Assembly: GCF_000143415.4 (NCBI RefSeq)
Contig: NW_003314271.1
Span: 2,919,729 to 2,983,728, forward strand
Reading direction: 5' to 3'
Length of the DNA stretch: 64,000 nt
From: Selaginella moellendorffii
Taxonomy: Eukaryota > Plantae > Lycopodiophyta
In this document: piece by piece, positions 2,310 to 42,802 of the stretch
Layout of the letters: every line of letters starts with the position of its first letter
Numbering within the stretch: position 1 is the stretch's first letter
Position numbers and translations under genes: made by a program
The notes under the pieces: generated by a model
Database searches by the model: none
What the model was told of the DNA's origin: nothing
Seen by the model: only the letters and a program-made list of their open reading frames with translations

Positions 2310-2410
2310 CGTCCCATTGGTGCTACTGCAGTGGAAGATTTGGACACCGAGATGCATCTGGGAAACGAGGAGTCGTGTGAGTAACGGAGGGACCTTGCAC
2401 GAATAAGTTA

Positions 2411-8800: not shown

Positions 8801-9842
8801 AAGTGAACAAAGGGCTATAGAGTTTGTTCAAGGTAGCTAAAACATCGATGAGGTACTTTGACAAACAAGAGTTGAAGTAGGGACATGGAAAGTAGATATG
8901 GATTTCACCGTGTTAGACATGACGGGATTTGATGTAATTTTCGGGATGGATTGGTTCAATTAATTTTTGATAGTTGTGCATGGACAAGGTAGGAACCTTG
9001 TGGTATTGGTAAATGCTCGAGGAGAACGATCCAGGGTAGAGGCATAAGATCTAAAGATAAGGCAAAGTAAGGCCAAAGACTCCTACTTAAATCTGGTGTC
9101 TATAAGAGGATAACTCATTAAAAGAACCAAGGCAACATTTTTGTGCTTACTCTCAATGAAGAGTGATAAAAAGACAAGAACAGAAAAAATACTTTTGGTG
9201 ATCCAATGGGTGTTAAACCAATTTTGAGATACTATACCGGCGGATTACCCCTCGCATGACCGATAGAATATAAGGTCGAGTTGGTCGAAGGTTCTAAAGT
9301 AGTGATTTGTCCCCCTTATCAGTTGAATGAAAAGAAACTTGAGGAGCTCAAACACCAACTTGAGGAGTTGTGCAAAAAGGGTATGTTAAATTGAGCAAGT
9401 CACCATATGGGGCACTAGTGTTATTTGTGAAAAAGAAATATAGGTGTCAAGACCCTTGACAAGATCAAGATTGGAAAATGCAAAAAGACAAAGAGAAAAG
9501 CTAGTGGAAACAAAGAAAAGGCCTTAGACTGGCGTTGATTCAGATTGTGGAGAAATGGAACAAGGCTAACCTATATATACTATAGGTTGATGAAGCTCCA
9601 CCACTCTTGGATCGAGGACGGCCTAAATATAGCTGAGGTTGAGGAGGCACCACATCATCATCAGGAATGTGGCTCGAAACTCAGGAATCGGGAAGTGTCT
9701 CGAGAGTTAGGAATAGGAAAGTGTCTCGAGAGTCAGGAATAGGGAAGTGTCTCGAGAGTCAGGAATGTGGTCTGCAGGTCAGGAATCTGGCGAGAGTCAG
9801 GAATGTGGCAAGAATTGGGGGATTCCTGACAGCACCCCCTCC

Positions 9843-12800
9843 TCAAGAACGAGTGGAACGAGGATGTGAACGAGAACGAAGAGGAGGATGAGATGAGCGG
9901 CGAGGGATGGGAGATGGAGAAAAAGAATGAGGACTGGGACGAGAAGGATAGCGGCGGTGGAAGTCCTGAACAAGGTCAGGAGAATGAAGCAGGTTGTCTA
10001 CAAGTTCCCAAGTGCGTTCCTTAGGTCCGTAACCCTTCCAGTCCACCAGATAGTAGAGTTTAGACCGTGAAATCTTGGAATCAAGGATGTCCTGAACCTC
10101 GTACTCAGACCCATCCTCGAGCTGCACTGGTGGAGGTGGAGGAATGACCCGATTTGGAATAGGACTGGGAATATAAGGCTCAAGGAGAGAGGAGTGAAAA
10201 ACGGGGTGAATTTGATATGAGGAGGGAAGTGCAAGGCGATAAGTGATAGGATTAATGATGGCAGTGATAGGGAAAGGACCAAGGCGTTTGAAATCGAGTT
10301 TTGGACAGGGCCTGGAGGTGGAGATATTTCGCCTGAGGAGCCAGACTTTATCCCCGATATTGTAAGGGGGACAATCCTGACGATGGACATTGGCAAATGT
10401 TGTGTGAGATTCCTGAGCACGATGGAGGTGGAAGGAGATGGAGTTGTGGATTTCCTGGAGGTTGGAGATAAATGCCTCAAAGCGGGGATTTGAATGAGAG
10501 GATTCAGATGGAGAAGGAAGTGAGAGATTGAATCGGGGATTTCGGCCAGAGTTCGCAAAGAAGGGGGAAACTCGAAGAGAGGAGTGAACAGAGTTGTTAT
10601 AGGAGAACTCAGCAAGAGGAAGGATATCGAACCAGTTATCCTGATGATAGTTGATGAAGCACCTCAAGAATTGTTCCAACGTCTGAATCGTTCGCTCGGA
10701 CTGCCCATCAGTTTGAGGATGATATGCCGAAGAGAGGTTGGCCTTCACTCCAAGCAGCTGCAAAAACTGTTGCCAGAAATGAGAGATGAACTGAGGCCCC
10801 CGATCCGAAACCACATCTGTAGGAATTCCATGAAGTCGGAAAATTTCCCTGAATACCAGTTTTGCCATGTCCTCGCCCGAAAACTCCTTGGTACATGGCA
10901 AGAAGTGCGCCATCTTTGTGAAGCGATCCACCACGACTAAAATGCTGTTGAAGCCTCCAGAACTCGGAAGATCACTCAAGAAATCCATGGAGATGGATTC
11001 CCAAGGACCTGAAGGGACCGGAAGGGAACGAAGCAAACTTGAAGGAAGGTGGCGAGGTACCTTATTCCGGGCACAAGTGTCACAGGAGGTAACAAAAGCT
11101 TTGATGTAGTCGTCCATGTGAGGCCACCAAAAGTCCCATGCAACTAGCTCATAGGTTTTCGCAATGCCGAAGTGACCAGCAGTCAGGCTATCGTGGCACG
11201 CCATCAGGACCAACCTTCGAGCATCACCTTCAGGAACGTAAAGCTGCTCCCCATGGTACAATAAGCCATCTAAGAACTTGAACTCGTCAAATCGCCGGCA
11301 GTCGGGAGTCACTGGGTGTCCAGCCTGAAGATGGGGGAAAATATCGCTAGCAAGATCATCGGATTGAAGATCGTTTCTGATTGCATCCATCAAGGAGGAG
11401 TCCTGAGGGGCTAGGGAAATTGCCATAACTTGAAGCCGATCAGGACCGAGGATAACTTGATCCTTTTGATTGAAGGCAGGATTACCAGGCCTGAGACTGA
11501 GATAGGAGCGCCTTGAAAGAGCATCAGGAAGGCCTTGAAACTTTCCAGGTCTGTACTTGATAACAAAGTCAAACCGACTCAGGAATTGTGCCCACCTTGC
11601 TTGACGACGGCTTAAAACTCGGGAAGTGGCAAAGTACTCGAGATTTTTGTGATCCGTCCAGACTGTTGTTTGATGGCTCGCCCCCTCCAAGAAACGGTGC
11701 CACTCTCCAAAGGAATCCACGATGGCAAGGAGCTCCTTGTCGTGGATTTCGTAATTGATCTCCGCAGGCTAGAATTTCCAAGAATGGAAAGCGACCGGAT
11801 GAAGTTCGTGATCCGCTCCGAGTTGAGACAGCACAGCACCAATGGCAAAGTCGGAGGCGTCAGCCTCGATGAAGAAAGGTTGTGAGGAATCAGCATGGAT
11901 CAAGACAGGAGCAGAACTGAAGGCCGCCTTGAGTGTGTCGAAGGCCTGCTGGGTAGCAGCAGACCAAGAGAAGGGAACATCCTTGCGAGTGAGATGTGTG
12001 AGAGGAAGGACAATGTCAGAGTAGTGATCAATGAATTTGCGGTAGAAGTTGGCAAAGCCAAGGAAAACCTGAACGTCCGACATTGATTGTGGAGGCTCCC
12101 ATTCGAGAATAGTCTTGACTTTGGCAGGATCCATTGTGATACCCTCAGGAGTGACAATGTACCCAAGGAACTCCACAGACTGCTGATCAAAGGAACATTT
12201 CTCAAGCTTCGCGTATAGGCCGTGTTCTCGCAGCTTCGCTAGCACCTTGCGAACATGTTTGTCATGCTCCTCTTGAGTTTTTGAGTAGATGAGGATGTCA
12301 TCGAGATAGACGATCACCATCTGATCAAGAAACTCCCGAAAGACGTCGTTCGCCATGTGTTGGAAAACTGCTGGAGCATTTGTCAAGCCAAATGGCATGA
12401 CAGTGTACTCGAAGTGGCCATAGCGGGTTCGGAACGCAGTCTTCCATTCATCACCAGGCCGGATCCGGATCAGGTTGTATGCTCCACGGAGGTCGATCTT
12501 GGTGAAGAAGCGGGCACCACCGAGGCGTTCTAACAGGTCCGAGATCAGGGGCAGCGGATAACGGTTCCGAACAGTCACCTTGTTCAAACCTCGGTAGTCG
12601 ATGACTAGCCGCAAGCTCCCATCCTTCTTCTTGACAAAGAAGACAGGCGCTCCAGTCGGGGACTGCGAATGCTGAATGTAGCACGAGGCAAGGTTCTCAT
12701 CCACGTACTCTTTGAGGGCCTTAAGCTTGGACGGGGATAACCCATAGATAGGTCCCCACGGAGGTGACGCTCCTTCCTGTAAATCAATGGGACAATCATA

Positions 12801-13601
12801 AGGCCGATGAACAGGCAGTACACTAGTTTTTTTCTTGTCAAACACATCCCCAAAATCATGATACTTCTCAGGAAGACTGATAGGAGAAACATGCAAAGCA
12901 AAAAGAAAAAGAGGTTCTGCATGAAGGAGTTCTTTCATAGTGATTGTGGAGATAGGAGGAGGCATACGACTAAATGGAATGATGAGACGAGGATACGGTC
13001 CAGTGTAAGATGGAAGAGAGGAAAAAGAAGAGGGTGAAAACTTTATAGAGTCAGGAACAGAACCCCAATTTGAGTTTAGGGAACTTTTCCTGATGCGGAC
13101 TCGATGAACAGCAGGGGAAGCCGTGGGAGAGATGAGCTGTAATTCCTTCCAACAGATCTGAGGCTGATGTAGTTGGAACCAAGGAAGACCGAGCACCACA
13201 GAGGAGGACTTGCTGTTGATGATGTTGAAGGCGATATCGGTGACGGTGGACCCGATGTGTACTCGAACGGGCAACGTTTCCCTAAGTCCAGAAGATGGAG
13301 ACACAAAATGCCCGCCGATGCCTTCAACCCTCAAATCCCGTATGGTAGGAGAAAGAGGAACGTGATGTCGGGCAGCAAAGTCCGTGTCCATGAAGCAAGA
13401 AGTTGCACCCGAGTCCAGTAATGCCAGAGCCTTGAGTCCTGATTGTCCGGTGAAAGAAAGGAGACATGGGACGCGGAAGTTGCGGGAATTGGTGGTGGCT
13501 TTGATGAAAGGTGGTGAGGAGCTTGATAAAGAAGAAAAGTGATTTTTATTCGGGGAGTCCAAACAGACAGCTCCTACTCTGTTTGGACAGGGTCGTTTCC
13601 C
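9843..13601 (-). CDS. pol: Tcn1-like Pol (PR-RT-RH-INT-chromodomain), -1 frameshifted from gag, one internal TAG at 11769
   Basis: LLDSGAT, YLDDILI, EADASDFA, SDRGPQF, HPQTDGQSE, LGPF, EYEVQDIL..YLVDWKGY chromodomain. Confidence 0.92.
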
Positions 13602-14530
13602 GACTGCAATAGAGGTGGACTTTGAGGCAGAGTGAACTCGAGCAGTCGAGGAGGCTTCTTGGGACATACAGCTGCTTTGTGATTAGGATCAGCATAATAG
13701 AGGCAAAGATTATGAGATATTCGACGTTGCTTCTCAGCAGGACTTAACTTCCCTCTAATGAGTCGGGGAGTACCAGAAATATCCATCGGAACCGGAGCAG
13801 TAGGTTCAGGAGTATGCCCCGAAGACTCAAGCTGGGATTCCTGAGTTTGGGACGGAAAAACAGCGGCGCGGCGACTTTCCTGACGACGTTCAAAGAGACG
13901 ATTGTCACATCGAACAGCTTTGTTGATGGCATCCGACAGGTCCTTGGGATCCTCCATGGTGAGCAGCAAATCCTTGAAACCGTTGTTGAGGCCGAAACGA
14001 AATTGGTCAATCAGGGCCCGCTCATCCCACTGAGTGTCCAAAGCAAGGAGTTGGAACTCTGCAGCGTAGATCGAGGCAGGACAAGACCCCTGAGAGAGAC
14101 GTCTCATCTTTGTGGTAGCAGCCCGAACCCGATCCGTCTCGCCAAAACATGCTTCGAGCTTCTCTTTGAACAATTGAAGATCCATCAGCTCTGGAACCAC
14201 GACCCCTTTCATGCTCTTCTCCAGAAGAGGAGAAAACCATGACAAACCTGCACCTTCGAGCAACGTCCCAATCGCGCCGATTTGAGACTCGGGAGTGTGA
14301 AGTGCGAAGATCAACTCCATCTGGTTCAGGAATCCGCGAAGCTCCGAACGCTTGCCTGAAAATTTCGCCGGGAAGCTCACCTTCGGTTCAGGAACTTTGC
14401 TGGATCCTTGAGCCGAAAGTGAAGCAAGCTCCTGCTGCATGCGAAGAAGGGTTGCCTTCAGCTCGGTATTCTCAGACTGGATTTTTGCAAGGACTTCAGC
14501 AAAGAAATCAGGATGGCTTGGAGACTCCAT
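13574..14530 (-). CDS. gag: Tcn1-like Gag
   Basis: MESPSHP.. start, PAKFSGKRSELRGF, PVPMDI, zinc knuckle CLYYADPNHKAAVC. Confidence 0.85.
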   Translation of the reverse strand: MESPSHPDFFAEVLAKIQSENTELKATLLRMQQELASLSAQGSSKVPEPKVSFPAKFSGKRSELRGFLNQMELIFALHTPESQIGAIGTLLEGAGLSWFSPLLEKSMKGVVVPELMDLQLFKEKLEACFGETDRVRAATTKMRRLSQGSCPASIYAAEFQLLALDTQWDERALIDQFRFGLNNGFKDLLLTMEDPKDLSDAINKAVRCDNRLFERRQESRRAAVFPSQTQESQLESSGHTPEPTAPVPMDISGTPRLIRGKLSPAEKQRRISHNLCLYYADPNHKAAVCPKKPPRLLEFTLPQSPPLLQSGNDPVQTE

Positions 14531-17502
14531 TGGCAAGAAGAAAGGAAAAAGGGGGAAAAAAAGGCAAAGGTAATCAAACAATCAAAACGAGCTAAATCAA
14601 AAAACGAAAAAACACAATCTGAATCAAACTGTCAAGACCCTTGACAAGATCAAGATTGGAAAATGCAAAAAGACAAAGAGAAAAGCTAGTGGAAACAAAG
14701 AAAAGGCCTTAGACTGGCGTTGATTCAGATTGTGGAGAAATGGAACAAGGCTAACCTATATATACTATAGGTTGATGAAGCTCCACCACTCTTGGATCGA
14801 GGACGACCTAAATATAGCTGAGGTCGAGGAGGCACCACATCATCATCAGGAATGTGGCTCGAGACTCAGGAATCGGGAAGTGTCTCGAGAGTCAGGAATA
14901 GGAAAGTGTCTCGAGAGTCAGGAATAGGGAAGTGTCTCGAGAGTCAGGAATGTGGTCTGCAGGTCAGGAATCCGGCGAGAGTCAGGAATGTGGCAAGAAT
15001 TGGGGGATTCCTGACAATAGGTCTCTACGTATATGCATAGACTATTGGTTGCTTAACAAGTATATAAAAAAAACAAGTACCCTTTACTAAAGATTGAAGA
15101 CTTATTTGATAAGTTAGGAAAGGCAAAATACTTTTCGAGGATTGACCTAAGGTCAAGATACTACCAGATCAGTGTAATAGAGGAAAATGTTGAAAAGACA
15201 ACCAGTCAAATAAGGTATGGAAATTTTGAGTTTCTAGTGATGCCCTTTGGGTTGTGCAATGCATTAGTGACGTTCTCGACATTGATGAACCACATTTTTG
15301 TACCTTATCTGGATGATTTGTGGTCGTGTACATTAACGACATTTTGATCTATATCGAGATGCTAAAGGAGCATGTCAAACACTTAATAAAGGTGTCTGAG
15401 AAACTAAAGGAATATAAGCTATATACTAAAAAGAGCAAATATGACTTTGCTCAACAAAAAGTAAAGTTTCTCGAGCATGTGGTGGGCAAGGATGGGCTTA
15501 AGGTGGAGTTTGAGAAGGTTTAAGTGATCCAAAAATGGGAACGACCATTAAATGTATACGAGTTAAGAACATTCTTGGGGCTATGCAACTATTACCGAAA
15601 ATTTATGAAACACTATTCGAGAGTAGCCTTACCTTTAATTGAAAACAAGAAAAAGGAAAATGGCATGGATAGTAACATGTGAGGTGGTATTTGTCCACTT
15701 CAAAAGGAAGGTGAGAAAAGCTCCCGTATTGGCGTTACCAAATGTTAGTAAAAACTTTGAGGTAAAAATGGACGCTTTAAACTTTGCGTTGGGCACAATT
15801 TTGAAACAAAACAACCATCCTGTAGCATTCTTCTCAAAGAACTTGAACAATGCTCAGCGAAAGTGACTTGAATATGAGAAGGAATTGTTTGCAATGGTAA
15901 GGGTGCTTAAGGAGTGGCAACAATACTTTGGGAGACACTTCAAAATTTATATGGATAATATGGCAATAAATTGTTTTTTGTCATAGCCCAATTTGAGAGG
16001 AAAACAGGGTTAATGGGCCAATGCTTTGGTCGAGTTCGACTGCAAGATTCTATATAAACTTAGGAAGCATAACATCATAGTAGATGCTCTAAGTCAAAAA
16101 GCAAGTTTGAAGTTAGCAATAACAACCTTTTGGGATTATGTATGGATAATATATAAGAATGATGGTTTAGCAAAACAAGTGTTGTTAAGGAACCAAGAAG
16201 CGTATGATGCTCACTAAAGAGGTGAGCCGCCCACGAAAAAGAAGACAAGTTATGCAAAATACAATAGACTTATCTATTATAAACATACGAAGATGTATGT
16301 TCCACAAGGGGAACTAAGGAAAGTAACCTTAGAAGAGTGTTATGATGGATTTTTAGTGGGATATGGTAGAGTGCCTAAAACAATGGGCTTACTCAAGAGA
16401 AAATATCACTAACCAAACATGGCTAAGGACATTCAAGAATATGTAAAGATATGTCTAACATATTAGCAAGTCAAAGCTGTGACTTAGGCTAGTGGGAGCT
16501 TGATAAAAAGCCTTCCAACTCCAGATCATTCGTGGAAATGTCTTACAATGGACTTCATGACAGGATTCCCCTCAAGTGAAGGGTTTGATGGGATATTTGT
16601 GGTAGTGGATTGGTTTTCAAAGATGACACAGTTCATATCTACCATAACAAAAGTGGATATAAAAGGTGTAGCGAAGCTATTCTTTGAACAAGTGGTTTGA
16701 GTGTAGTGAAGGCTAGAAGAGATTATCTCAGATCGAGATAAGATTTTCACTAGTAGGTTTTGGAGAACTCTCATGCAACAATATTGCATCAAGTTGAAAT
16801 TTAATACAGCCTATCATAAATATGTATTTGGTATTAAGTCAAGTTTGATGGCAATAACACTTCTTAATAGATGGACAAATAGAAAGGGTGAATAAGCAGC
16901 TGAAGGATTATTTGTGATGTTATGTGCTATAACAACTCACCACATTCGAGTATTAGGGTGAGTTTATAGGAAGTCATTAAGTTATTGAAGTTATTGAAGG
17001 TCTTGTGAAACTTAGAGAGTTCCTTCAAGACTAGTTCCTGAACTTTACTATCCCTACTATACTTTTGAAACCCTTTACAACCCCCCTAGAGACATGAAAC
17101 TAGGGCTTAGGGGCCTTAGGTAGGACTCGAGTGGTGCTAGAGGGGCCACCCAAGGAAGTGCTAAGTGAGGACCAATGAACTACAAGGTACTCAAGTGGGA
17201 CACCACTCCACATGAGATAAAAGCATTGCAGATGGTTTCCCTTTTAGAAGTGGGAGTTGCTTTTGTTCCTAGGGGCTTGGGCCTTCCCTTCAGGAAGTCG
17301 GGGAATAGGGGTACCCATACTGGGCCATTAAGCCATGGGTTTCCCCCTAATGTCCCAAAGCAAGTGTTGCACCCAAGGCTTGAGATTTAGAGGGTCCTAT
17401 AATCAAGTCTTGTTGTACCAAGGGATGTTAAAAACTTAGACTTGGTGTGCTTAGTTGCTTGTGCTTGTGGGGAGTGTAATCAAACATTAAGTCAAGTCTA
17501 AT

Positions 17503-17664
17503 TGTAGCACATATGATCATGGGATGAGATTTGGATATACTGTCACCATGGGTCCTTGGAACCTTGGGGAATAAATTGGGATAAAATAGCCACTAAGGGC
17601 TCTCTCATCAAGCAATTGCCCTTTTTCTAGTTGGCTTAAGGGGAGAGAAATAAAGTGCACTACA
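17503..17664 (+). mobile_element. Solo LTR of TRIM family T
   Basis: Reverse complement of the 19053-19214 LTR; TSD CTAAT (17498-17502/17665-17669). Confidence 0.9.
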
Positions 17665-18199
17665 CTAATCCAGAAAGGGGGATTATGAGAGAATTTGAAA
17701 ATGGATGGATGGTTAACGCTCTGTTGCTTGTGCAATGAATTGCTAAAATCAAGTAAAACCAAGTAGGAGTTAGTACAATATGTGGGAACCTTAGTGAGGG
17801 AATTTAATTGAAGCCAAGGCCATGGTGGTTGGATATATGAGGTAAGTTAACAAATTGGAAAGAAAAAATTTATAGCTTACACATCTCCCATAGGAAGTAG
17901 AGTTGAAGGACGTGTAGCAAAATGTGGAAGAGGTAATATCTCATAACATTGTGCCAAGTGAAGAGCATCATCAAAGTGTGAGACACAAATCCCTAAGCCC
18001 CAAAGTGAAGCCGAAAGGGTGCCATGTGGTAGTGGCCGAAACAAAAGCCAAACGAGCATAACATGTTTGAACTAAAAGCTCCAACTTGAAAGGTCAAGAG
18101 CAGGAGTGAAACTCCCAACAAAGTGCTCAAGGAACGAGCATGAAGCGAGCAATAAGAGAGTTTCTTAAAAAGGGACATAAGAGGACCAACACATGACAC

Positions 18200-23214: not shown

Positions 23215-23269
23215 TATATAAAGTCCCATAAGTAGCAACTTTAATCCCGGTGTGTGGGATTACAAGGTG

Positions 23270-23502
23270 AGCATACCCAGATTGAGGAACCACTTCCTAA
23301 GATATTGGGTAGATTCATCCCTAAGAATATTTGCTGAGCATACCCAGATTGAGGAACCACTTCCTAGGATATTGGGTAGATTCATCCTTAAGAATATTTG
23401 CTAAGGCATAGTAGAAAGTGCAAAGCTATCCTCCTAGGATATTGGGTAGATTCATCCCTAAGAATATTTGCTGAGCATACCCAGATTGAGGAACCACTTC
23501 CT
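23270..23502 (+). repeat. Local ~66-bp tandem duplications in family D internal region
   Basis: GAGCATACCCAGATTGAGGAACCACTTCCT occurs three times with shared downstream sequence; single copy in the other D element (~39570-39635). Confidence 0.85.
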
Positions 23503-25417
23503 TGTAAGCCACAAATTTTTCCTTTCCAATTTGCCAGCTTACCTCGTCTATCCGACCAACTCTGCCTTGGCTTGTGCTAAGTTCCCTTGCCAAGGTTCCC
23601 GCCTATGGTACCAGCTCCTACTTGGTCCTACTTGGTCCTACTTGGTTTCAGCTACTCACTGCACGAGCAACGGAGTGTTAGCCATCCATCTACGGATTCC
23701 CAAATCTCTCCCAATCCCCCTCTCCAGGTTAGATTGGACTTAAGGTTCGGCTACACTCCCCGCAGGCACAAGCAGCCAAGCACACCAAGCCTCCAGATTC
23801 CTAACGCCCCTTGGTACCACAAGACTTGATCATGGGACCCTCTAAATCCCAAGTCTTGGGTGCAGCACTTGCTTCGGGATGTCGAGGCGAAACACCGTGG
23901 CCTAACGGCCCGGTATGGGTACCTCTACCCCCCCACTTCCATCCCAAAGGGAAGGCCCAAGCCCCTAGGAAGGGCGAGGACCAATGAGCCACAAGGTACT
24001 CAAGTGGGGCACCACTCCACATGAGCCAGGAGCACCGCGCAGTCGGTTTCCCTTTCGGGAGTGGGAGCTGCTCTTGAGCACTTCCCTGGGTGGCCCCTCC
24101 GACACCACTCAAGCCCATGCTCACTCCCACCCAAGGCCCCTTGGCCCCAGTCTCAACCTCAAGTCAGTTTGGAAGCACCACTGGAGAGTTCCTTCAAGAC
24201 TGGTTCTTGGACCTCACTATCCCTACTATACTTTTGGAACCCCCTGCAGCCCCCCCCGGGAGACACACGCTTTGGGCTTTCACCCCTTGACCCGTATTAG
24301 TATTTGGACTTAGTCTCTGGCTCGATCTCGGACCCGATTTCGGATCCGACTTCGGATTCGGTCTCGGACCCGATCTCGGACCCGACCTCGGACTCGGTCT
24401 CGGACCCGATTTCGGATCTGATTTCGGATCTCGGACTCCGTCTCGAACTCGGACTTGAACTCGGTCCCCGAGTCGGTCTTGGACTCGATTCCGGACTCTA
24501 TCTCGAACTCGGTCCTAGAGTCGGTCTTGGACTCAATCTTCGACTTGGTCCCATCCGATGAACTCTTTGTCATTTTGGTCATGCTTTTGGGGTTCCTTTA
24601 GCCTATGACACCTCGGCGAGTTGGTTCCTTACAACTCCACCACCTATAGAAGAAGTTCGATGCCCACATTGAACGTCTCGTTTTATCCTACGACTTGTTG
24701 ACCATGTCTCTGGGGGCATCCCCCCACTTAGCGGTGTGCCTAAGTTAGCCTCCCCGGCCAGGAGCCCATGACAACGGAATATAGGTGTCCCTATACCCCT
24801 CACCTCACCACGCCCTAGTATGGGGTCGGGACTTGAACCCAGCCTTGCTTTACTAAGGGGTTGGGACTCAAACCCAACCTCCATAGAATACGTCTACAGA
24901 TTCGACATCCCCGCGGGGAGTCGGGCGTAGTGCTCTACGCCTGGTCGACTTATCCAACCTATGCTAATTAGCTTACCTTCGGCACGCCTTCGAGTCCCAA
25001 CATATGACACTTGCTCAACTTTGCAAATTGATATTTTAATTGAACTTTGCATAAGTACATAGAGTTCTGCCTTGCAGAAATTCCTCCACTAGATCTCGCA
25101 CGTTCGCTAGGTTCTCCTCCGGTTCCCATGTTGCTTTGCAGTGTGGAAATCCTTTCCACTTCACATGGAACTCTCTCACCTCGCGTCTTTGTCGCTTGCT
25201 CTTGCGCGCATTGAGGATGGCCTCGACTTCATATTCCTCTTCCCCTTGGATAACCTCAAGTAAAGGTCTCACTTGGTCCTTGCGAAGTGGATCCTCAAAG
25301 TACGGCTTGAGTAAGTTCACGTGGAACACTGGGTGCATCTTCCCCATCTCTCGAGGAAGTCGGAGTCAGTAAGCCACTTTACTGATTCGTGCCTCAATCT
25401 CGTAAGGCCCCGCAAAC

Positions 25418-25469
25418 CTGCTTAAGGAACTCAAGATCAATTCATTTACAGGAATACATGCATCTTTAC
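25418..25469 (-). other. Putative 52-nt spliceosomal intron 2 in family C integrase
   Basis: CAAAG|GTAAAG..TTAAGCAG|GTTT; removal restores KLTQRFAGPYE and the frame into the chromodomain. Confidence 0.8.
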
Positions 25470-25887
25470 CTTTGGGTCAACTTTCGGCTGATCCCACTTG
25501 GTAGTCTGAGGTTCTTGGTGTTCAGCCACACCTTCTCCCCAGCTTGGAACTCTACATCCCGACGCTTGTGGTTCGCGTATTTGGTTTGCCTTTGTTGAGC
25601 CCGTTCCAAGGAATCCCTCACTAGATTCCAAATGTTGAGTCTTTCCGCCGTGAATGCCTCCACTGCGGGCAACTTTCCATGATACTCGGCCACGCCGAGT
25701 TCCATAGGACTTTCAATAGCTCGCCCATTGATGACTTCCTATGGACTCACCCCGATACTCGAATGTGGTGAGTTGTTATAACACATTTCCGCAAGTCCCA
25801 AATGACTTACCCAATCGGTTTGGTCTCCCGAGACATAGCATTGCAAATAATCCTCCAGTTGCCTATTCACCCTTTCCGTTTGTCCGT

Positions 25888-25933
25888 CTGTCAAGAAGTG
25901 TTAGTGCCAACAACTTGACTTAATACCCCATAC
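25888..25933 (-). other. Putative 46-nt spliceosomal intron 1 in family C integrase
   Basis: ACAG|GTATGG..CACTAAC..TTGACAG|AC; removal restores YHPQTDGQTERVN; homolog at 16824-16870. Confidence 0.8.
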
Positions 25934-28900
25934 CTGTCTGCGGGTGATAGGCTGTGCTGAATTTCAACTTGGTGCGATACTATTTTAGGAGAGTCCTCCA
26001 GAACCTACTGGTGAAGATCTTATCTCGATCTGAGATGATCTCTTCCGGTCTTCCCCGCACTCGAACCACTTGTTCAAAGAATAGCTTCGCCACACCTTCT
26101 GCATCCACCTCTGTTGTGGTGGGTATAAAATGTGCCATTTTTGAAAATCGGTCCACCACCACAAATATCGCGTCAAACCCCTCGCTTGGGGGGAGTCCCG
26201 TGATGAAGTCCATCGTAAGACATTTCCACGGACGATCTGGAATTGGGATGCTTTGCAACAAGCCCCCACTAGCCTTAGTCACGGCTTTTACCTGCTAACA
26301 TGTTGGACATGTCTTTACATAGTCTTGGACGTCCTTAGCCATATCTGGCCAATGGTACTTCCTCTTGAGTAAGCCCATCGTCTTGGGCACTCCGCCGTGT
26401 CCCGCAAAAGGTCCGTCATGACACTCTTCTAAGGCCACCTTCCTTAGTTCCCCTTCTGGAACATACACCCTCATTTGCTTGTAATAGATGAGTCCGTTGC
26501 GTTCCGCATAGCCCGTTTTCTCTTCCGTTGGCAGCTCACCTCTCTGGTGAGCTTCCCGTGCCTCTAGATTCCTCAGCAACACTTCTTGTGCTAGACCATC
26601 GTTCTCATATGCTGTCTGCACATCATCCCAGAAGGTTGCTGTTGCGCTGGATATTGCCAACCTCAAGCTCGCTTTTCGACTTAGCGCATCCGCCACGATG
26701 TTGCTCTTCCCAGGCTTGTACAGAATCTCGCAATCAAACTCGGCCAAGGCATTGGCCCACCGACCTTGTTTCCCTCTCAGGTCGGGCTGTGACAAGAAGT
26801 GTTTCGTTGCCACATTATCCGTGTAAACCTTGAAGTGTCTCCCAAGGTAGTGTCGCCACTCCTTGAGCGCCTTGACCACTGCAAACAATTCCTTCTCGTG
26901 GGCAGGCCACTTCCGTTGAGCCTTGTCCAACTTCTTCAAGAAGAATGCTACCGGATGGTTGTTTTGCTTCTAAACTGTGCCCAACGCAAAGTCTGAAGCA
27001 TCCGTTTCTACCTCAAACTCCTTACCAAAGTCTGGTAATGCCAATACGGGAGCCTTCCTCAACTTCCCTTTGAGGTGGAGGGATGCTGCCTCGCATTCCG
27101 CTGTCCACACCATCTTCCCTTTTCCTGTTTGGTCCGTTAAGGGCAGGGCTACTCTCGAATAGTGTCTGATAAATTTTTGATAGTAGTTGCATAGCCCCAG
27201 GAATGCCCTCAACTCGTGTACATTCGATGGTCGCTCCCATTCCTGGATCGCTTGGACCTTCTCCGGGTCCACCTTGAGCCTGTCCTAGCCCACCACAAGC
27301 CCGAGAAACTTTACCTCTTGTTGAGCAAAGTCACATTTTCTCTCTTTAGCATACAGTTTGTGTTCCCTTAGTTTCTCAAACACCTTCGCCAAGTGTTCGG
27401 CATGCTCCTCTAGCGTCTCGCTATAGATCAAGATGTCGTCGATATAGACGACCACGAAGTGATCCAGATAGGGTACAAAGATGTGGTTCATCAGCGCCAA
27501 AAACGTTGCCGGCGCATTACATAGCCCGAAGGGCATCACCAGAAACTCAAAGCTCCCATACCTCGTTCGACAGGTTGTCTTCTCAACATCTTCCTCGGCT
27601 ACCCTGATCTGGTAGTATCCTGACCTTAGGTCAATCCTCGAGAAGTATTTTGCCTTTCCCAACCTATCGAACAGGTCCTCAATCCTTGGCAAAGGGTACT
27701 TGTTCTTCTTTGTATACTTGTTGAGCAACCGGTAGTCTATGCACATGCGCATAGATCCATCTTTCTTTTTCACAAATAACACCGGCGCCCCATACGGTGA
27801 CTTGCTCAACCTAACATACCCCTTGTCCACCAACTCCTCTAGTTGGCACTTGAGCTCCTTGAGTTCTTTTTCGTTCAAACGGTAAGGGGGACGAACCACT
27901 GCCTCAGCACCCTCGACCAGCTCAATCTTATGTTCTACTGGTCGTGCTGGGGGCAGCCCCGTCGGTAGCTCCTCTGGCATGGTATCCTGGAATTGGTCCA
28001 ACACCCGCTGGATCACTAAAGGTACTTCTTCCGTTCTTGTCTTTTTGTCACTCTTCACCAAGAGTAAACACAAAAATGCTACCTTAGTTCCTTTAGTGAG
28101 TTGTCCACTCGTGGACACCAGGTTTAAGTAGGAATCTTTGGCTTTGCTTTGCCCTACCTTTAGATTTTGGGCCTCCACCCTAGATCTTCTTCCTTGGGCA
28201 TTCGCCAGTACCACAAGGTTCCTACCTTGTCCATGCAAGGCTACCATGAATCGATTGAACCAATCCATTCCGAAGATCACGTCAAATCCCGCCATGTCCA
28301 ACACGGTGAAATCCATGTCCACCTTCCAAGTCCCCACTTCGACTCTCGCTTGTCGAAGTACCTCATCGGTGCTTTTGCTACCTTGAACAAACTCTATAGT
28401 CCTTGGTTCACCTACCCGCTGCACCGTTAGTCCGGCTTGCCGGACTATGTCTGCAGCCACAAAATTATCCGAAGCACCCGTGTCAATAAGGATCTTAACA
28501 AAGCTACCTTCGAGCTTCCCTCGGAGAGCTAGTAGATGTCGCGAACGACTCTCTACCAAAGTTGCTCGTGTAATGAGTAACTTTGAGCTAGGGACTAGAT
28601 CACATACCTTAGTTTAGATTTCACCCAATTTAATGGCCATATTGGCTCTGGCTTTCTTCGGGTAGGGACATTCCCTCGAAAAGTGTCCCGCTTCGCCACA
28701 GTTGTAACATACGTTGTTTCCCACGCTGCTATACGACTTGACTTTCTTATCCGTGGGTTTGTCTCTTTTCGCTTGACTCCCCCACGTACTCGCTCGCTGG
28801 CCACCAGATTTGCCTTTCCGGAACCCTGAGGACTCATTCTTAAAGAAACTCTTCTTGAATTTCCCTCTGCTAAACGTTCCCCTTGGTTTGGCCCCTTTGC

Positions 28901-31109
28901 TAAACGTGGATCCCGACCCCGTCGTGTTCCCCTTTCGCAGGTTATCGTTGAAATGCACCTTGATAGCCGCATCCAACGCTTCCTTATAGTTGGTCGGGTT
29001 CCACCGCATCACTTCACCGCGAGCCCAGGTTTGCAAACCTGATATGAAGGCATGGAACACATCCATATCCCCCATGTCCGTGACAAGTATCCTCTTTGCC
29101 ATAAACCCATTCACATACTCCTGAATGGTTCTGGTCTGCTTCAGCCTACTCAGCTCGTCCCTTAGATCCAAAGTAGCATTCGGAGAAACGTAAGTTGCAT
29201 GGATCCTCGCCCTCATCATTTCCCAAGTGGCCACCGGTCCTTCGTTTGCCTCTGTCGTTCTCCACCAAGACTTGGCATTATCTACCAAGTATGGTTTTGC
29301 ACATGGGACCTTCTCCAAGCTCGGTAATCGCAACGCTCGGAAGTAGTCCTCCATATCATAAAACCAATCCTCCACCACCTTATAGTCGTTCACTCCCTTG
29401 AAGATTGGTGGGGGCTTTGGTTTGTACTTGGGAACTGCCTGAGGGACTGATTCCACTTCGGTCTGTTCGACCTTGTCTGGTTTTGCCTCAGTCTCTGCCG
29501 AAGGGTCCGCACCTTCTGCGCTGCCAGCATCCGCAGTCTTTCGCTTTTTCTTCCGCTTCTCATCACGCTTTAGCTTGCGTACGAGAGTCTCCCACAGGGC
29601 ATTGGTCTGCGCCAATTGTCCTCTAGAACGTCCAATCGAGCCTTGGATGACCGAACCTCACCACCAGACTCCTATTTGGAAGTTGCCTCACTAGAGTCCT
29701 CCTCATGCAAGGATTCCTCATCCATAGCCTTCTGTTCGACTGGAGGCTCTAGCTCTGGAGGAGGTTCCGTCTCCGCCTGGGTTTGCTTACGTCCTGCCCT
29801 TGCCATCTCCCAGCAATACGCCTCTATCCTTCGCTAGAACTGAGGAAGAGGCTCCGATACCACATTGTAAGCCACAAATTTTTCCTTTCCAATTTGCCAG
29901 CTTACCTCGTCTATCCGACCAACTCTGCCTTGGCTTGTGCTAAGTTCCCTCGCCAAGGTTCCCGCCTATGGTACCAGCTCCTACTTGGTCCTACTTGGTT
30001 TCAGCTACTCACTGCACGAGCAACGGAGTGTTAGCCATCCATCTACGGATTCCCAAATCTCTCCCAATCCCCCTCTCCAGGTTAGACTGGACTTAAGGTT
30101 CGGCTACACTCCCCGCAGGCACAAGCAGCCAAGCACACCAAGCCTCCAGGTTCCTAACACCCCTTGGTACCACAAAACTTGATCATGGGACCCTCTAAAT
30201 CCCAAGTCTTGGGTGCAGCACTTGTTTCGGGATGTCGGGGCGAAACACCGTGGCCTAACGGCCCGGTATGGGTACCTCTACCCCCCCACTTCCATCCCGA
30301 AGGGAAGGCCCAAGCCCCTAGGAAGGGCGAGGACCAATGAGCCACAAGGTACTCAAGTGGGGCACCACTCCACATGAGCCAGGAGCACCGCGCAGTCGGT
30401 TTCCCTTTCGGGAGTGGGAGCTGCTCTTGAGCACTTCCCTGGGTGGCCCCTCCGACACCACTCAAGCCCATGCTCACTCCCACCCAAGGCCCCTCGGCCC
30501 CAGTCTCAACCTCAAGTCAGTTTGGAAGCACCACTGGAGAGTTCCTTCAAGACTGGTTCTTGGACCTCACTATCCCTACTAGTACTTTTGGAACCCCCTG
30601 CAGCCCCCCCCCCCCCCCCCCCCCCCCGGGAGACGCACGCTTTGGGCTTTCACCCTTTGACCCGTATTAGTATTTGGACTTAGTCTCTGGCTCAATCTCG
30701 GACCCGATTTCGGATCCGACTTCGGATTCGGTCTCGGACCCGATCTCGGACCCGACCTCGGATTCGGTCTCGACCCGATTTCGGATCTGATTTCGGATCT
30801 CGGACTCGGTCTCGAACTCGGACTTGAACTCGGTCCCCGAGTCGGTCTCGGACTCGATTCCGGACTCTATCTCGAACTCGGTCCTAGAGTCGGTCTTGGA
30901 CTCGATCTTCGACTTAGTCCCATCCAATGAACTCTTTGTCATTTTGGTCATGCTTTTGGGGTTCCTTTAGCCTACGACACCTCGGCGAGTTGGTTCCTTA
31001 CATTCCTAGGATATTGGGTAGATTCATCCCTAAGAATATTTGCTAAGGCATAGTAGAAAGTGCAAAGCTATCCTCCTAGTCTAGAGGAGAATAACCGAAA
31101 GAAACGTGT

Positions 31110-35415: not shown

Positions 35416-38400
35416 TGTAAGCGACTAATTTTTCCATTCTACTTTAGTCACTTAACCACACCTCCGACCACTTGGAGGAGTCTCATTCACAACCTCCATA
35501 AGTCCCATTCCGGACTTGGGGCTTGCTAGCCCCGAGAATGGCATCCATGCCACTCAACCTTTGCACTTGGTCCAAGTGCTCCACGTGTCCGATCCCATGA
35601 CCGACACCCAAAGGTACCACTGACATCTCGGCCCGTTNNNNNNNNNNNNNNNNNNNNNNNNNNNNNNNNNNNNNNNNNNNNNNNNNNNNNNNNNNNNNNN
35701 NNNNNNNNNNNNNNNNNNNNNNNNNNNNNNNNNNNNNNNNNNNNNNNNNNNNNNNNNNNNNNNNNNNNNNNNNNNNNNNNNNNNNNNNNNNNNNNNNNNN
35801 NNNNNNNNNNNNNNNNNNNNNNNNNNNNNNNNNNNNNNNNNNNNNNNNNNNNNNNNNNNNNNNNNNNNNNNNNNNNNNNNNNNNNNNNNACCACTAAGTC
35901 CCATGGTCCTCTAGGACTTCCTCACCACACGACTGTGTCCTTGGTCACTACCCCAGAGGACTGCTCCTCTTCCTTTCCACAGTCTAGGCCTTTGGGACAA
36001 CATTTCGGAACACCGTGGCCTTACGCGAGCCACCTGGGTACTCTCCTTGCCTTTCGACTTTAGGTGCTCTAGCCATGGGCTTAGAGCAAGGTTCCGTTGA
36101 GCCACGCCTGGTATCCAAGTAGGTAGTGCCACCCACACTTGGACTGGGAGCATCGGCCAGTCGATCTCCCGGGAGAACTAGAGCCGGCTCTTGAACACTT
36201 CACCAAGCTACCCCGCTTGTCGGTCCGTATTCACTTTAGTCTTGGACTTCCCAGTGGTCAGTTCATCACCCAACACTGGGTCTGGCCTTCCTGGGCCAAA
36301 CTGGCCTTTCCTGGCCAAACTGGCTCCACTACAGTCCTCCCCCTTACTATACTTTTGGAGCTCACCAAACCCCCCAGGGTCTGGGAGACGAACGCTTTGG
36401 GCTTTCACCCTCTCAGACTCGAACTCGGACTCGGACTCGGACTCGAACTTGGACTCGGACTCAGACTCGGACTCGGACTCGGACTCGGGCTCGGGCTCGG
36501 TCTCAGCCTTGGCCTCGGTCTCGGTCTCGGTCCCGGTCTTGGTCCCGGTCTCGGTCTTGGTCTCGGTCTCGGTCCCGGTCTCGGTCTCGACCTCGGACTC
36601 CATCTCGGACTCCATCTCGGTCCATCTCGGACTCCATCTCGGATCCATCTCGGACTCCGTCTCGGTCCACCTCGGACTCCACCTCGGACTCCATCTCGGG
36701 TCCATCTCGGACTCCATCTCGGGTCCATCTCGGACTCCGTCTCGGTCCATCTCGGACTCCATCTCGGATCCATCTCGGACTCCGTCTCGGTCCACCTCGG
36801 ACTCCACCTCGGACTCCGTCTCGGTCCATCTCGGACTCCATCTCGGATCCATCTCGGACTCCGTCTCGGTCCACCTCGGACTCCACCTCGGACTCCATCT
36901 CGGGTCCATCTCGGACTCCATCTCGGGTCCATCTCGGACTCCGTCTCGGTCCACCTCGGACTCCATCTCGGACTCCATCTCGGACTCCATCTCGGGTCCC
37001 TTTTTGGAGCCTTGCTTATTGCTCACTTTGTGCTCGCTCCTTGAGCACTTTGTTGGGAGTTCCACTCCCGCTCTCGACCTTTCAAGTCGGAGCTTTTAGT
37101 CCAAACGTGTTACGCTCGTTTGGCTTTCACTTCAGCCACTACCACGTGGCACCCTTTCCAGCTCCACTTTGGGGCCTAGGGATTTTGTGTCTCACAACTC
37201 CACCACCCATAGACGAAGTTCGATGTCCTCATCGAACGGTAAACCATTTTATAAAGTAACTCCCGCATGTGTTACCATTCCCATCCTTGGCACCTAGCCA
37301 ATATTTGTCAATGGTTTGACATTGAAGGCTCACCATGCCTTCTCCATATTCGTCAATGGTTTGACACCAAAGGCTCACCATGCCTTGCCCATCCTCTAAG
37401 GAGGATAGTCTCTCCAACTTAGAGACTCACTTGACCACCTAGGGTGGTTTGCTCCTTTTTATTGGTTCAGTTCTCGCCAAACCCGTTAGAGACACCCTCT
37501 CTAACTCAATTCCACTACTCATTCTTGAGTAGTCACAGATTCCATTGATCTACCTTTACACTTTGGAACGTTTACTCTTGACTTTTTGGAATCAATTTCC
37601 TAGGTGTCTCTGACACCTTGCCTTGCACATTTTGTGCAACTCCACTTCCCCTCCTAGGAAGTTCTCTACTCGAGGGCACCCTCATCCTCTTTCCTATTTT
37701 TGTGCCACCATTGGCATTACGTTCCATTTATCATTATTTGTGCTAGGGTTGTCCACGGCCCTATCTTTTGGCTACTTAGTTGCTCCCTCACTTAGAGCCT
37801 TTCCTTTACCCAATTGGAGCACTTGGGAATCCATCCTTGGAAGTCCACTTCTTTCTCCGCAATCTGTTAGCATCAAACACATTAGTGTTCCTTGGCTAAC
37901 TTTGCCACTTGGATTCTTTCCAATGGATTCCACGGCCCTATCTTGGGCACTCGTCTTTTGCTTCTATCCTTGGATTGTTGCACCAAGCAACATAGGATTG
38001 CTACCTCCATTTTTGAGGTTTCCTTTCGATTCCATAGCAAACACTTTGCTTTTGCCAAGTCCAGAGGGTGTTCACCCCTAGTACGTCTCTTTAACATTTT
38101 CTGTCGTGGGCTCTATCCACGGCCCAACTTTTTGAGACCCTCCCTTGGATCTTTTATAGAGACTACTTTCCTTGGACTTACTATGCCATAACATTGACAT
38201 AGCTCATTTCCCTTAGGTGTTCTTCCCACTTGGTCACCTCAACCAAACCACACCTTTATCAATAGTTCAAATCAACACTTTGAACTAGGAATCATATTCC
38301 ATAACCCAAACAAAGACTTTGTCCTTGTTTAGCCCCAAGATCACCTAGTGATCTTATCTTGACCCCTTAATAGGTCTATCAATAGGGACTAGGTCTTCCA

Positions 38401-41400
38401 GACCCTTCTGAGTTGTTGATTATGACCCCGGGGGCATCCCCCACACTTGGTGGTGCACCCAAGCCAGCCCTTCCGGCCAAGGATCCATAGCAACTGAGAC
38501 TGGGTGTCCCCATCTCATTCACCACGTCCTTGGTGCCCTTTGCACCAAAGTGTTCAAGTTAGATATGCCGAGCTTTCACTCTAAACAATCTAACCGTGCA
38601 TCACGACTCCGAGGCACCCTCGCTTGGCGGTGTGCCCAAACCAGTCTCCACACTGAGAGTCCATGACCACCGAAAAATGAGTGTCCTCATATCCCAAACC
38701 ATCACCACGCCCTAGTGAGTTGGGACTCGAACCCAAGCACTAGAGGGTCGGGACTCGAACCCAACCTCCGTATATGCATCTACGGATGGCATCACCCAGG
38801 ATGCCTTGCGTGACTCCCCACGCCGGTGCACCAACTTATACTCAAAGCGCGCTATAGATCACAGCTTAGGAACCTAGTTCCTCCACATTGCCAAGTCCTC
38901 TCACTTGACAAGTCTGTGATCCTGCATGGACTCCTCCATGCTTGGCCCCATGGCCCACCCTTTTTGAAGTTATCACCTTCAACTAGGGTATTTGTTCCCC
39001 TGACTTGCCAATTTCACTTTGGCAAGTCCTCCGACCACTGTAACATGGTTCCTGCACAAGCGTGAAAGCCCTTGATCATCGACTTTCATTCAAAGCCCTC
39101 TCTTTGAACACTCAGGAACTACTTCCCTAACCTTGATAGCCTTGTCTCATGGCAAGCTTCAAGACCACGCTTCTGCTGCGCCACTCTGATTTTGCGCGTG
39201 CTTTGAACCATTTACACTTGGCCTTTCTAGGTACTAAGCTACCTAAAATCATCTTTGGGAACCTTGAAGGGACTCTGTCCCTTAGCTTGCTAAGGCCTCC
39301 CTTTTTGCAAGCTTTCCAATTACCATATAGTCTAACATGGACAATTCCATATTTTAGACTCTCCATGGCATCACGATTGCTAGCGGCAACACCCTCGAGC
39401 CCCCACTTGATTCTCCACTCCCAGCTGGCATAACCAACCTTGGTTATGCCCTTCGATTCCTATGGTTTGGTTCTATCCCCTTACTACTTGCTTTTGGCTT
39501 CACACCTTTCCTTTGGTCATTCTCCTCCAGACCAGGAGGATAGCTTTGCACTTTGTATCATGCTTTAGCAAGTATTCTTAGAGATGAACCTACCCGATAG
39601 CCTAGGGAGTGGTTCCTCAATCCAAGTATGCTCACCCTATAATCCCACACACCGAGATTACGTTGTTGTTTATGAGCATTTACATGCCCATTACTAGCCT
39701 TGCCAAAATTCCATTTTTGGCTTTGTCCAATTCAAGTAGATAGTCTTCTCCTGTCTCCGCCACCTTGGGCATTTGGATAGCACCTTCTATCCATCATTCG
39801 CTAGAGACTTAATCCTTTGGGCCTTATCTATTGCCCTCGCGACATCAAACACCACCTTCTGGTGTTCTAGAGTGTTCGGGTGTCCCAATGATGGCTTCCT
39901 TGACAATGAGTATTTCCTTTTATGACATTGACTTACTATATCGCAACATAAGCAACTTATCCCCCGTAAAGGTATATCCAACTTCCCTATGCCATTAAGA
40001 AGGCTTGGGTAGCTACCTTCTACCCGTTTAACCAATTATTTTGTACCTCTCGCTAAGTTGCCTTATAGATGTCAAGTCCTACAACTCATTGCTGGTGCTT
40101 CCACACCTCCATCATTATCTGGGTCACCACACTCCAACTGCATGCTCTGCAGCTTAGGCTATGCCATTCCTATTTCCATTGGGATTCCTTTGGCAAGGGG
40201 TTCTCATGAACCCACCAACATAGCCTCAAGGTATCACACCTTGGCACATTTGGTGTCTCCACACTATCGGCTCCACGAGCCTACCTCTATGACACTTTTT
40301 CTTTGTGTCTAAGTCTTTGCCAAGACCAATACCGCTCTTTCTCATGCCAACCATCTGTTAGCACGGCACCATAGAGGTCACACACAACTTTGTTTCAAAG
40401 TTGTTTTCTTTTTGGGAACACCTTTCCCACGACTTTAGCATGGCACATTTTGCCATCGATGAGATACCCTCTGTTCTCATCCTTGGATCCTATGATCCCC
40501 CCCATCCTTCGTGGGGTACCACACACTTCAGTCCAAATGCTTCCATCAATCCTTTAGGATTATTCCTTGACTCTATTGGAGTCATCCAGCTTTTTGGACT
40601 TTGTCATCCGACAACCCATGAGGTCCTACCTTTGAGGTGCCAGCTCACTGGAATACAACTTCTTGTATTCAGGTCCTACTCACAAGGACCATCTTTGCAA
40701 GTGTTACTCTGACACTTGATTTGTTCTCTTGGGGCAACCTTTTGCCTCTTAGGACCACTTGTCCATGTGATGAGAATACCAACTCATCCTCTAAGTACAT
40801 CCCCAACTCCTTGGGTTGTTCTAGCATTTATCAAAGGTAACCTCAGCTACCATTTCGAGGACTTGTGTCCTCTCCTATATTTGACCTCCCATGGTCATCA
40901 ATTCCGGTCTCAAAGTTATGAGCTTGGCCTCAACTATATGAGGGTAATCTTATGACTCCTTTATTGTTTTGGAGTCATTATCTTTCCCGTGATCCCAATT
41001 ACAGTTGTTTACCACAACTACGTTAGCCTGTTTGCTGCGTCAAACGCTCATCTAGATCACATCCTCAGCTCTCTGAGGAAACCTTATACCGTTCCCAAGA
41101 TCCCAAAGTCGTTCTATTATTGGCCCTTTTCTATCCATCACATCGTGCCCAAGTTCATGCATGAACTTGAGTGGTGAGCCATGTCCTCTCGACATGCTAC
41201 TCCTCAAGGATAGGCCCACTCCTAGGACCTTCCAATGCCAACATCAATGGTGATATACTTGAGCACCAATAAAAGTCGGACTAAGGAACAGCTCCGATAC
41301 CAAATTGTAAGCGACTAAATTTTCCATTCTACTTTAGTCACTTAACCACACCTCCGACCACTTGGAGGAGTCTCATTCACAACCTCCATCAGTCCAATTC

Positions 41401-42802
41401 AGGACTTGGGACTTGCTAGCCCCAAGAATGGCATCCATGCCACTCAACACTTGCACCTGGTCCAAGTGCTCCACGTGTCCAGTCTCAAGATCGACACCCA
41501 AAGGTACCACTGACATCTCGGCCCGTTATGCTAAGGCCATGCCCATTCACCTTTGCTGCACTAGTGGTCCAATACCACTTGCATCACCATCCCGTCTCTC
41601 CAAGACTGGGCCATCTGTCCACGAGTGGTCATCCTAGATCCACTCCTTAGCATCCTTAGGATGCCCACAGACCTGGGGAATAGCCTTCCCCAAAGTCCCT
41701 TTGTCAGTTCCTACCAAGTCCCTTTCTGCCCCTGGCCGTATTTGCCAACACTGTCACTGGATCGAGGCCCACAGGCCCGACCACTAAGTCCCATGGTCCT
41801 CTAGGACTTCCTCACCACACGATTGTGTCCTTGGTCACTACCCCAGAGGACTGCTCCTCTTACTTTCCACAATCTAGGCCTTTGGGACAACATTTCGGAA
41901 CACCGTGGCCTTATGCGAGCCACCTAGGTACTCTCCCTGCCTTTTGCCTTTAGATGCTCTAGCCATGGGCTTAGAGCGAGGTTCCGTTGAGCCACACCTG
42001 GTATCCAAGTAGGTAGTGCCACCCACACTTGGACTGGGAGCATCGGCCAGTCGATCTCCCGGGGGAACTAGAGCCGGCTCTTGAACACTTCACCAAGCTA
42101 CCCCGCTTGTCGGTCCGTATTCACTTTAGTCTTGGACTTCCCAGTGGTCAGTTCATCACCCAACACTGGGTCTGGCCTTCCTGGGCCAAACTGGCCTTTC
42201 CTGGCCAAACTGGCTCCACTGCAGTCCTCCCCCTTACTATACTTTTAGAGCTCACCAAACCCCCCAGGGTCTGGGAGACGAACGCTTTGGGCTTTCACCC
42301 TCTCAGACTCAAACTCGGACTCGGACTCGGACTCGAACTCGGACTCGGACTCGGACTCGGACTCGGACTCGGACTCGGGCTCGGGCTCGGTCTCAGCCTT
42401 GGCCTCGGTCTCGGTCTCGGTCCCGGTCTTGGTCCCGGTCTCGGTCTCGGTCCCGGTCTCGGTCCCGGTCTCGGTCTCGACCTCGGACTCCATCTTGGGT
42501 CCATCTCGGACTCCATCTCGGGTCCATCTCGGACTCCGTCTCGGTCCACCTCGGACTCCATCTCGGACTCCATCTCGGGTCCATCTCGGACTCCATCTCG
42601 GGTCCCTTTTTGGAGCCTTGCTTATTGCTTGCTTTGTGCTCGCTCCTTAAGCACTTTGTTGGGAGTTCCACTCCCGCTCTCGACCTTTCAAGTCGGAGCT
42701 TTTAGTTTAAACGTGTTACGCTCGTTTGGCTTTCACTTCGGCCACTACCACGTGGCACCCTTTCCAGCTCCACTTTGGGGCCTAGGGATTTTGTGTCTCA
42801 CA
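35416..42802 (-). mobile_element. Second, better preserved family D copy inserted inverted in the 3' LTR of the first
   Basis: LTRs 35416-37196 (contains N gap) and 41306-42802; PBS rc GCTCCGATACCA at 41291-41302; PPT rc ACTCCACCACCC; 4.1-kb internal region without recognisable intact ORF. Confidence 0.9.
35638..35889. other. Assembly gap
   Basis: Run of N. Confidence 0.99.

Follow-up and report, generated by a model that had tools for sequence, protein, structure and literature searches.

Two GT..AG inserts in the integrase region of a Selaginella moellendorffii chromovirus are likely to be spliceosomal introns retained in genomic copies

Plant LTR retrotransposons are generally without introns, the exceptions being Ogre and EVADE, according to a 2025 review (PMC12786077). 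Reverse transcription of a spliced RNA erases its introns. An LTR element that keeps an intron must therefore separate the RNA that is translated from the RNA that is copied. Ogre is so far the accepted plant case of an intron that has to be spliced to make Pol. In this Ty3/gypsy element of the Tat lineage, found in pea and Medicago, the polyprotein region of genomic copies contains a stably maintained spliceosomal intron (PMC6317226; Ustyantsev et al. 2015, PMC4408406). Penelope-like elements are likewise exceptional among retroelements in retaining spliceosomal introns in genomic copies (PMC4209133). We analysed a window of 64,000 nucleotides from S. moellendorffii, in which the integrase region of a chromovirus is interrupted by two inserts of 46 and 52 nt. 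Both inserts are likely to be genuine U2-type spliceosomal introns, heritable in a high-copy chromovirus family, whose spliced mRNA would encode the full integrase and whose unspliced RNA would serve as the replication template. No prior report of introns inside the integrase of an LTR element was found in the literature searched; the coverage of that search was incomplete, and its outcome is no proof of novelty.

As listed in Table 1, both inserts are enclosed by a complete Ty3/gypsy LTR retrotransposon on the minus strand, here called copy A, which was delimited by self-BLAST of the window and by Pfam. The order of its Pfam domains is Retrotrans_gag, zinc knuckle, aspartic protease, RVT_1, RNase H, IN H2C2 finger, rve core, SH3-like Tf2-1 and chromodomain. 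Because this order ends in a chromodomain (Chromo E = 7.5e-16; SH3_Tf2-1 was also matched), copy A is assigned to the chromoviruses of Ty3/gypsy, and it meets the criteria for that group: LTRs, a target duplication and the gag-PR-RT-RH-IN order with a C-terminal chromodomain. The 5-bp target duplication, the TG..CA LTRs and the primer site show that copy A is a bona fide, normal integration. The primer-binding site, TGGTATCGGAGC, is one which we take to be of the initiator tRNA-Met type; this resemblance rests on general knowledge, and the match was not computed. The 3′ LTR is preceded by AGGTGGTGGAG, at the place where a purine-rich tract would be expected.

Table 1. Coordinates of the intron-bearing element, of its older relative and of neighbouring features in the window (position 1 is the first letter of the 64,000-nt stretch; a slash marks an exon-intron border).
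Feature	Position	Strand	Basis or remarks
5′ LTR of copy A, TG..CA	29866-31002	-	self-BLAST pairing with 23502-24633; ends read directly
Primer-binding site of copy A, TGGTATCGGAGC	29851-29862	-	3 nt inside from the 5′ LTR
Exon 1: gag, zinc knuckle, protease, RT, RNase H, IN zinc finger, IN core to HPQT; 5 in-frame stops; start codon unresolved	25934-29657	-	translation, Pfam
Candidate alternative intron, 157 nt, AAG/GTATGT..GCAG/AC, over the protease active site	28451-28607	-	X18 contig end; tentative
Intron 1: 46 nt, phase 1, CAG/GTATGG..CTAAC..GACAG/AC, 41% GC	25888-25933	-	sequence; exact skip in X19 contig; kept in copy B
Exon 2: remaining IN core (DGQTERVN...) and IN C-terminal region to KLTQ(R)	25470-25887	-	frame tracking, conceptual splicing
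Intron 2: 52 nt, phase 2, AAG/GTAAAG..AAGCAG/GT, 35% GC	25418-25469	-	sequence; X19 contig skip
Exon 3: GPY/F (SH3-like) module, chromodomain, polyprotein stop	25036-25417	-	Pfam, frame tracking
3′ LTR of copy A, TG..CA	23503-24633	-	self-BLAST pairing with 29865-31002; ends read directly
Target-site duplication of copy A, AGGAA, 5 bp	upstream 31003-31007, downstream 23498-23502	-	flanks read
Copy B, older decayed family member, split by the nested Tcn1-like element	~6668-17881	+	self-comparison of the window
Intron 1 in copy B, 47 nt, GT..AG	16824-16870	+	counterpart of intron 1 of copy A
Tcn1-like chromovirus, nested in copy B, apparently intact	9445-15016	-	LTRs 387 bp, TSD ATAGG
Host PP2C phosphatase gene (Pfam PP2C 5.6e-37)	49300-50577	-	frame continues across two GT..AG gaps

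The two LTRs of copy A differ by 19 substitutions at 1121 aligned sites (1.7%) and by four indels. Since the divergence is this low and 18 of the 19 substitutions are transitions, copy A is fairly young and has been decaying mainly through changes of the C-to-T type. It is nevertheless clearly dead: nine in-frame stop codons lie within 28616-25369 on the minus strand, five of them in exon 1. That nine stops accompany LTRs differing by only 1.7% is a side observation; the TAA stop at 28614-28616 is CAA in one contig of run X18, one of the sequencing runs described below. The stops may reflect C-to-T decay, or possibly descent from an already defective template that was mobilised in trans. No intact, stop-free copy of the family was seen within the window. 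Copy A sits in a tandem repeat of about 70 bp, its flanks at 23268-23502 and 31003-31079 being 94-99% alike, and units related to this repeat occur near 39500-39690. The LTRs of the family contain a degenerate short-period repeat (24300-24560 and 30670-30920 in copy A), with similar arrays at 36340-36990 and 42230-42600.

Reading frames were followed by three-frame translation of the minus strand and by piece-by-piece frame tracking. In copy A a single reading frame runs from about 29657 down to 25935 and then shifts at the 46-nt insert and again at the 52-nt insert; no further change of frame precedes the polyprotein stop at 25036-25038. Exactly two frame changes thus occur across about 4.6 kb of coding sequence, both of them at GT..AG inserts. 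Both inserts meet the criteria for U2-type introns on GT..AG borders, exon-side consensus and a branch-like motif; in intron 1 the CTAAC motif lies about 14 nt from the 3′ end, and in intron 2 the branch motif is weaker. The existence of the two introns in the DNA of copy A, with these signals, is shown directly. Both are AT-richer than the exons of copy A, with GC contents of 41% and 35% against 50%, a composition that suits spliceosomal introns. RNA folding of both intron regions gave no signal of a packaging-type structure (z -0.55 and +0.66).

The position of intron 1 is such that it separates the two catalytic Asp residues of integrase from the catalytic Glu (D,D-35-E). After conceptual splicing, junction 1 reads AYHPQT/DGQTERVN, including the catalytic Glu, within AYHPQTDGQTERVN, and junction 2 reads KLTQR/FAGPY, within KLTQRFAGPYEI (X stands at stops in both). 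Both restored junctions are collinear with the uninterrupted integrase of the neighbouring Tcn1-like element, which reads AYHPQTDGQSERTI and KRLGPFPI at the two positions and has no introns in its integrase. If the RNA is left unspliced, the frame meets a stop after 4 codons at donor 1 (HPQTGMGY, then stop), and at donor 2 the stop is the first codon past the Arg that spans the donor (KLTQR, then stop). Since the catalytic Glu lies directly 3′ of intron 1, the unspliced product is without it.

A first rival explanation is that the inserts are neutral lesions of a dead sublineage, intron-like by chance, and that the element is simply broken. In its favour, copy A is dead, with nine in-frame stops, and a 5-nt repeat, GACAG, stands both at the end of exon 1 and at the end of intron 1, where it can be read as the footprint of an insertion. 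Against it, excision restores both the frame and conserved motifs at each of the two sites. The footprint reading of the repeat was rejected, because an RNA-type contig (see below) excises the insert exactly and the repeat follows for the most part from the CAG/G splice consensus.

The window also gives a view of host introns. The PP2C gene (49510-50577) stays in frame over two GT..AG gaps, of 60 and 55 nt; a CTAAT branch motif is present in one of the two. The element introns are thus close to host introns in size, a comparison that is inferred in so far as the PP2C introns were deduced from frame continuity. A preliminary description, made from the sequence alone, had stated that the two inserts are the sole frame changes from gag to the chromodomain, that both are GT..AG and the first has CTAAC, that excision restores HPQT/DGQTERVN and KLTQR/FAGPY, that unspliced RNA stops within a few codons of each donor (4 and 0 codons as counted here), that the Tcn1-like element carries the same motifs uninterrupted (read here as AYHPQTDGQSERTI and KRLGPFPI), and that the inserts are of host-like intron size. 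Frame tracking, reading of the sequence and conceptual splicing bore out all of these claims, the one on size by inference only (PP2C gaps of 60 and 55 nt); the nine in-frame stops had not been stressed.

The Tcn1-like element itself is young, with LTRs 98.7% identical and open ORFs of 625, 632 and 335 aa. A third Ty3/gypsy element, at 1452-4941 on the plus strand, has gag, PR, RT, RNase H and an IN zinc finger, with an 806-aa open frame, and is only about 30% identical to the copy A family. Positions 35638-35889 are 252 N, an assembly gap.

A second member of the copy A family, copy B, is present in the window. Identity between it and copy A is 79%, and between its own two LTRs only about 80%, so that its insertion must be much older than that of copy A. 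Its LTRs are without the part of about 380 bp that holds the short-period repeat in copy A. Since intron 1 is found in both copies, the family must have had it before the insertion of copy B and have kept it up to that of copy A. With GT and AG still in place in the old copy, intron 1 has survived many replication cycles. In copy B the region of intron 2 is deleted and only part of exon 2 is retained; within the window, copy A is the sole genomic copy in which intron 2 could be examined.

Four public runs (X1, X18, X19 and X22) were mapped onto positions 24634-29864 (5,231 letters). X22 is the sole true raw RNA-seq run among them, and the RNA label of X19 and X18 is a guess made by the tool. 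In X19, one contig joins 25811-25887 to 25934-26050, with exactly the 46 nt of intron 1 missing. Another contig joins 25084-25415 to 25468-25869, with 52 nt missing, which equals 25418-25469 given a 2-nt GT ambiguity. These spliced contigs are of low depth (7.3 and 3.1), and the evidence for splicing rests on the two of them, from a single run. X19 covers 15 of 30 bins at a depth of 2-8; X1 has 58,685 pieces with a summed depth near 900,000. The fact that X19 is sparse on a family of very high copy number indicates that it behaves as RNA, not as genomic DNA. A contig of X18 is unspliced across intron 1 (25463-26072), for which genomic RNA and DNA contamination are both possible. X22 gave only 12 reads, none at a junction, and is uninformative; it provides no evidence against splicing. 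The spliced contigs of X19 together with the unspliced contig of X18 would be compatible with partial splicing, but the latter may stem from DNA carry-over, and the raw reads are too few.

The DNA-type run, X1, has a depth of 200,000-270,000 inside intron 1. Among its best-supported joints, all at a depth of 335 or less, no joint skips either intron; some X1 joints remained uncounted, and rare DNA copies without introns are therefore still possible. The small indels listed for X1 are confined to intron 1 (25910-25913), to two sites behind the polyprotein stop (25027, 25033) and to one ahead of gag (29621); this pattern is to be expected if the replicating lineage keeps its exons in frame, exons 2 and 3 among them. 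Retention in DNA is thus shown in a young insertion, in an old insertion and in bulk contigs, and exact removal is shown in RNA-type data. The inserts thereby satisfy the criterion of precise removal from RNA while being kept in DNA (copies A and B and the X1 contigs), with the caveat that the RNA label of X19 is a guess, though one backed by its thin, shallow coverage of so abundant a family.

With these data the lesion explanation can be set aside almost completely. In the RNA-type contigs both inserts are cut out with single-base precision, and intron 1 occurs in a copy of very different age and at a depth of at least 200,000 in the DNA-type run. RNA reads across both junctions had been proposed in the preliminary description as a check, and the outcome was positive, the X19 contigs skipping 46 and 52 nt. 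The same description held that its reading would fail if spliced reads were absent, if GT/AG were not conserved across copies and if young intact copies lacked the inserts. None of these conditions was fulfilled: spliced contigs exist, the GT/AG of intron 1 is kept in copy B, and the young copy A carries both inserts.

A second rival explanation accepts the introns as real and derives the spliced contigs from a few transcribed, intron-less "processed" copies. The intron-bearing majority would then be non-autonomous and would depend for its movement on integrase supplied by those copies or by other chromoviruses. Three points speak for it. The incomplete count of X1 joints leaves rare intron-less DNA copies possible; the stops of copy A exceed what its young LTRs predict, which hints at mobilisation in trans; and an apparently intact chromovirus with an uninterrupted integrase lies in the same window. 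On the other side, an intron-less copy would itself arise by splicing at these very sites, so that this rival calls into question only how the family works today, while the introns themselves are still taken as genuine. The best-supported X1 joints show no skipping of an intron, none of the listed indels falls in exons 2 or 3, a sign that their frame is maintained in the replicating lineage, and the integrase pieces of the neighbouring Tcn1-like element are only 37-50% identical to those of the copy A family. We consider this explanation unlikely.

One further splice, in the Gag-protease region, is only tentatively indicated. The match of an X18 contig ends at 28452 and is followed by 28 unmatched letters, 20 of which match the bases just upstream of a donor, AAG/GTATGT (28608/28607). 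Excision of the candidate intron would leave Gag plus one codon, then a stop. Its donor, its acceptor and the downstream stop are all kept in copy B. It may be an alternative intron for a Gag-only mRNA, a possibility that depends on a single contig end.

The preferred reading, that the two integrase introns are spliceosomal and used by the element, leads to the following mechanism, the most likely one. The host spliceosome would remove both introns from some transcripts. Only the spliced mRNA would encode a full-length integrase, complete with the last residue of the catalytic triad, GPY/F module and chromodomain. The unspliced RNA would encode Gag-PR-RT-RH and an integrase truncated before the catalytic Glu, and it would be the molecule that is packaged and reverse-transcribed. 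Both introns are still there in new genomic copies, which requires unspliced RNA to be the form that is packaged and copied; and if the packaged RNA is unspliced, integrase made from spliced messages would have to act on the cDNA of other molecules, that is, in trans. The interpretation given in the preliminary description, with spliced mRNA for integrase and chromodomain and unspliced RNA as the genome, is supported by the present data. Partial or regulated splicing, the exclusion of spliced RNA from packaging, the dependence of the element on its own integrase and the action in trans are still inferred only.

According to a third rival explanation, splicing is an incidental or defensive response of the host which the element does not use, and replication proceeds with a truncated integrase or without exons 2 and 3. 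Expression in the raw RNA run is very low (12 reads), and there is no evidence that the spliced mRNA is translated; both points are in favour of this view. However, without splicing the frame stops short of the catalytic Glu, and yet copy A has a normal 5-bp target duplication. Exons 2 and 3 of copy A also keep a recognisable IN C-terminal region and chromodomain (Chromo E = 7.5e-16), copy B having only part of exon 2. This third explanation is therefore regarded as very unlikely, more so than that of processed copies.

In a bolder form of the preferred reading, the family would cede control of its integrase to the host spliceosome. Two obligatory mini-introns, perhaps joined by a third, alternative one for a Gag-only mRNA, would sort translated from replicated RNA. 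An unidentified mechanism would bar spliced RNA from the particles, and in this way the introns would have been passed on through RNA-based copying during the long time between the old and the young insertion. We regard this bolder form as about as likely as not. If true, the family would lend itself, as a natural case, to studying by what means retroelements distinguish spliced RNA from unspliced RNA, and whether the presence of introns protects a transposon against RNA silencing.

Relatives of the family were sought in protein databases, and no close family member was found there; a 224-aa piece covering RNase H and integrase gave only distant matches of 46% or less. An exhaustive search of representative proteins with an 89-aa piece of exon 2 likewise found no close member, with partial matches of 62% or less. 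As the protein databases contain no close member, no census of the family was possible. In each of the short distant relatives that were retrieved, the reading continues across the junction-2 site with no intron, so that related chromoviruses do not in general have the introns. Annotation of transposons based on ORFs would score elements of this kind as frameshifted or dead.

Several known systems resemble the one described here in part. In BARE1, a Gag-only mRNA arises through a 104-nt alternative intron directly behind gag, which shifts the frame so that translation ends three codons downstream (Chang et al. 2013, PMC3735527); the candidate 157-nt intron of copy A may be compared to it. Elements of the BARE1, copia and EVADE type are Ty1/copia, however, and their intron is optional coding sequence, whereas the integrase introns of copy A are non-coding and their removal is needed for function. 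In retroviruses, spliced RNAs are messages and the unspliced RNA is the packaged genome, a likeness to the present case. Retroviruses make Gag-Pol, integrase included, from unspliced RNA and use splicing only for env and accessory genes, whereas here a pol product needs splicing. Penelope-like elements, which share the retention of introns, differ in being target-primed, in having a GIY-YIG endonuclease and in being without LTRs or integrase.

The closest likeness in mechanism is to Ogre, in which the unspliced RNA must be the template and the intron breaks the polyprotein frame, so that the downstream Pol domains need splicing; in copy A the stops lie 0-4 codons from the donors. The Ogre intron lies between PR and RT, in an element of the Tat/Ogre lineage, whereas copy A is a chromovirus of a non-seed plant and has two mini-introns (46 and 52 nt) inside integrase, one of them separating the catalytic Asp residues from the Glu. 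The copy A family thus probably works like Ogre, yet it is no Ogre, having a chromodomain and introns inside integrase. Its introns are a compact case for the study of RNA sorting, of packaging selectivity and of whether introns might help an element to escape silencing. Intron-dependent expression of Pol would in this way be widened from Ogre to another lineage, a chromovirus of a non-seed plant, and to another gene, the core and C-terminal part of integrase.
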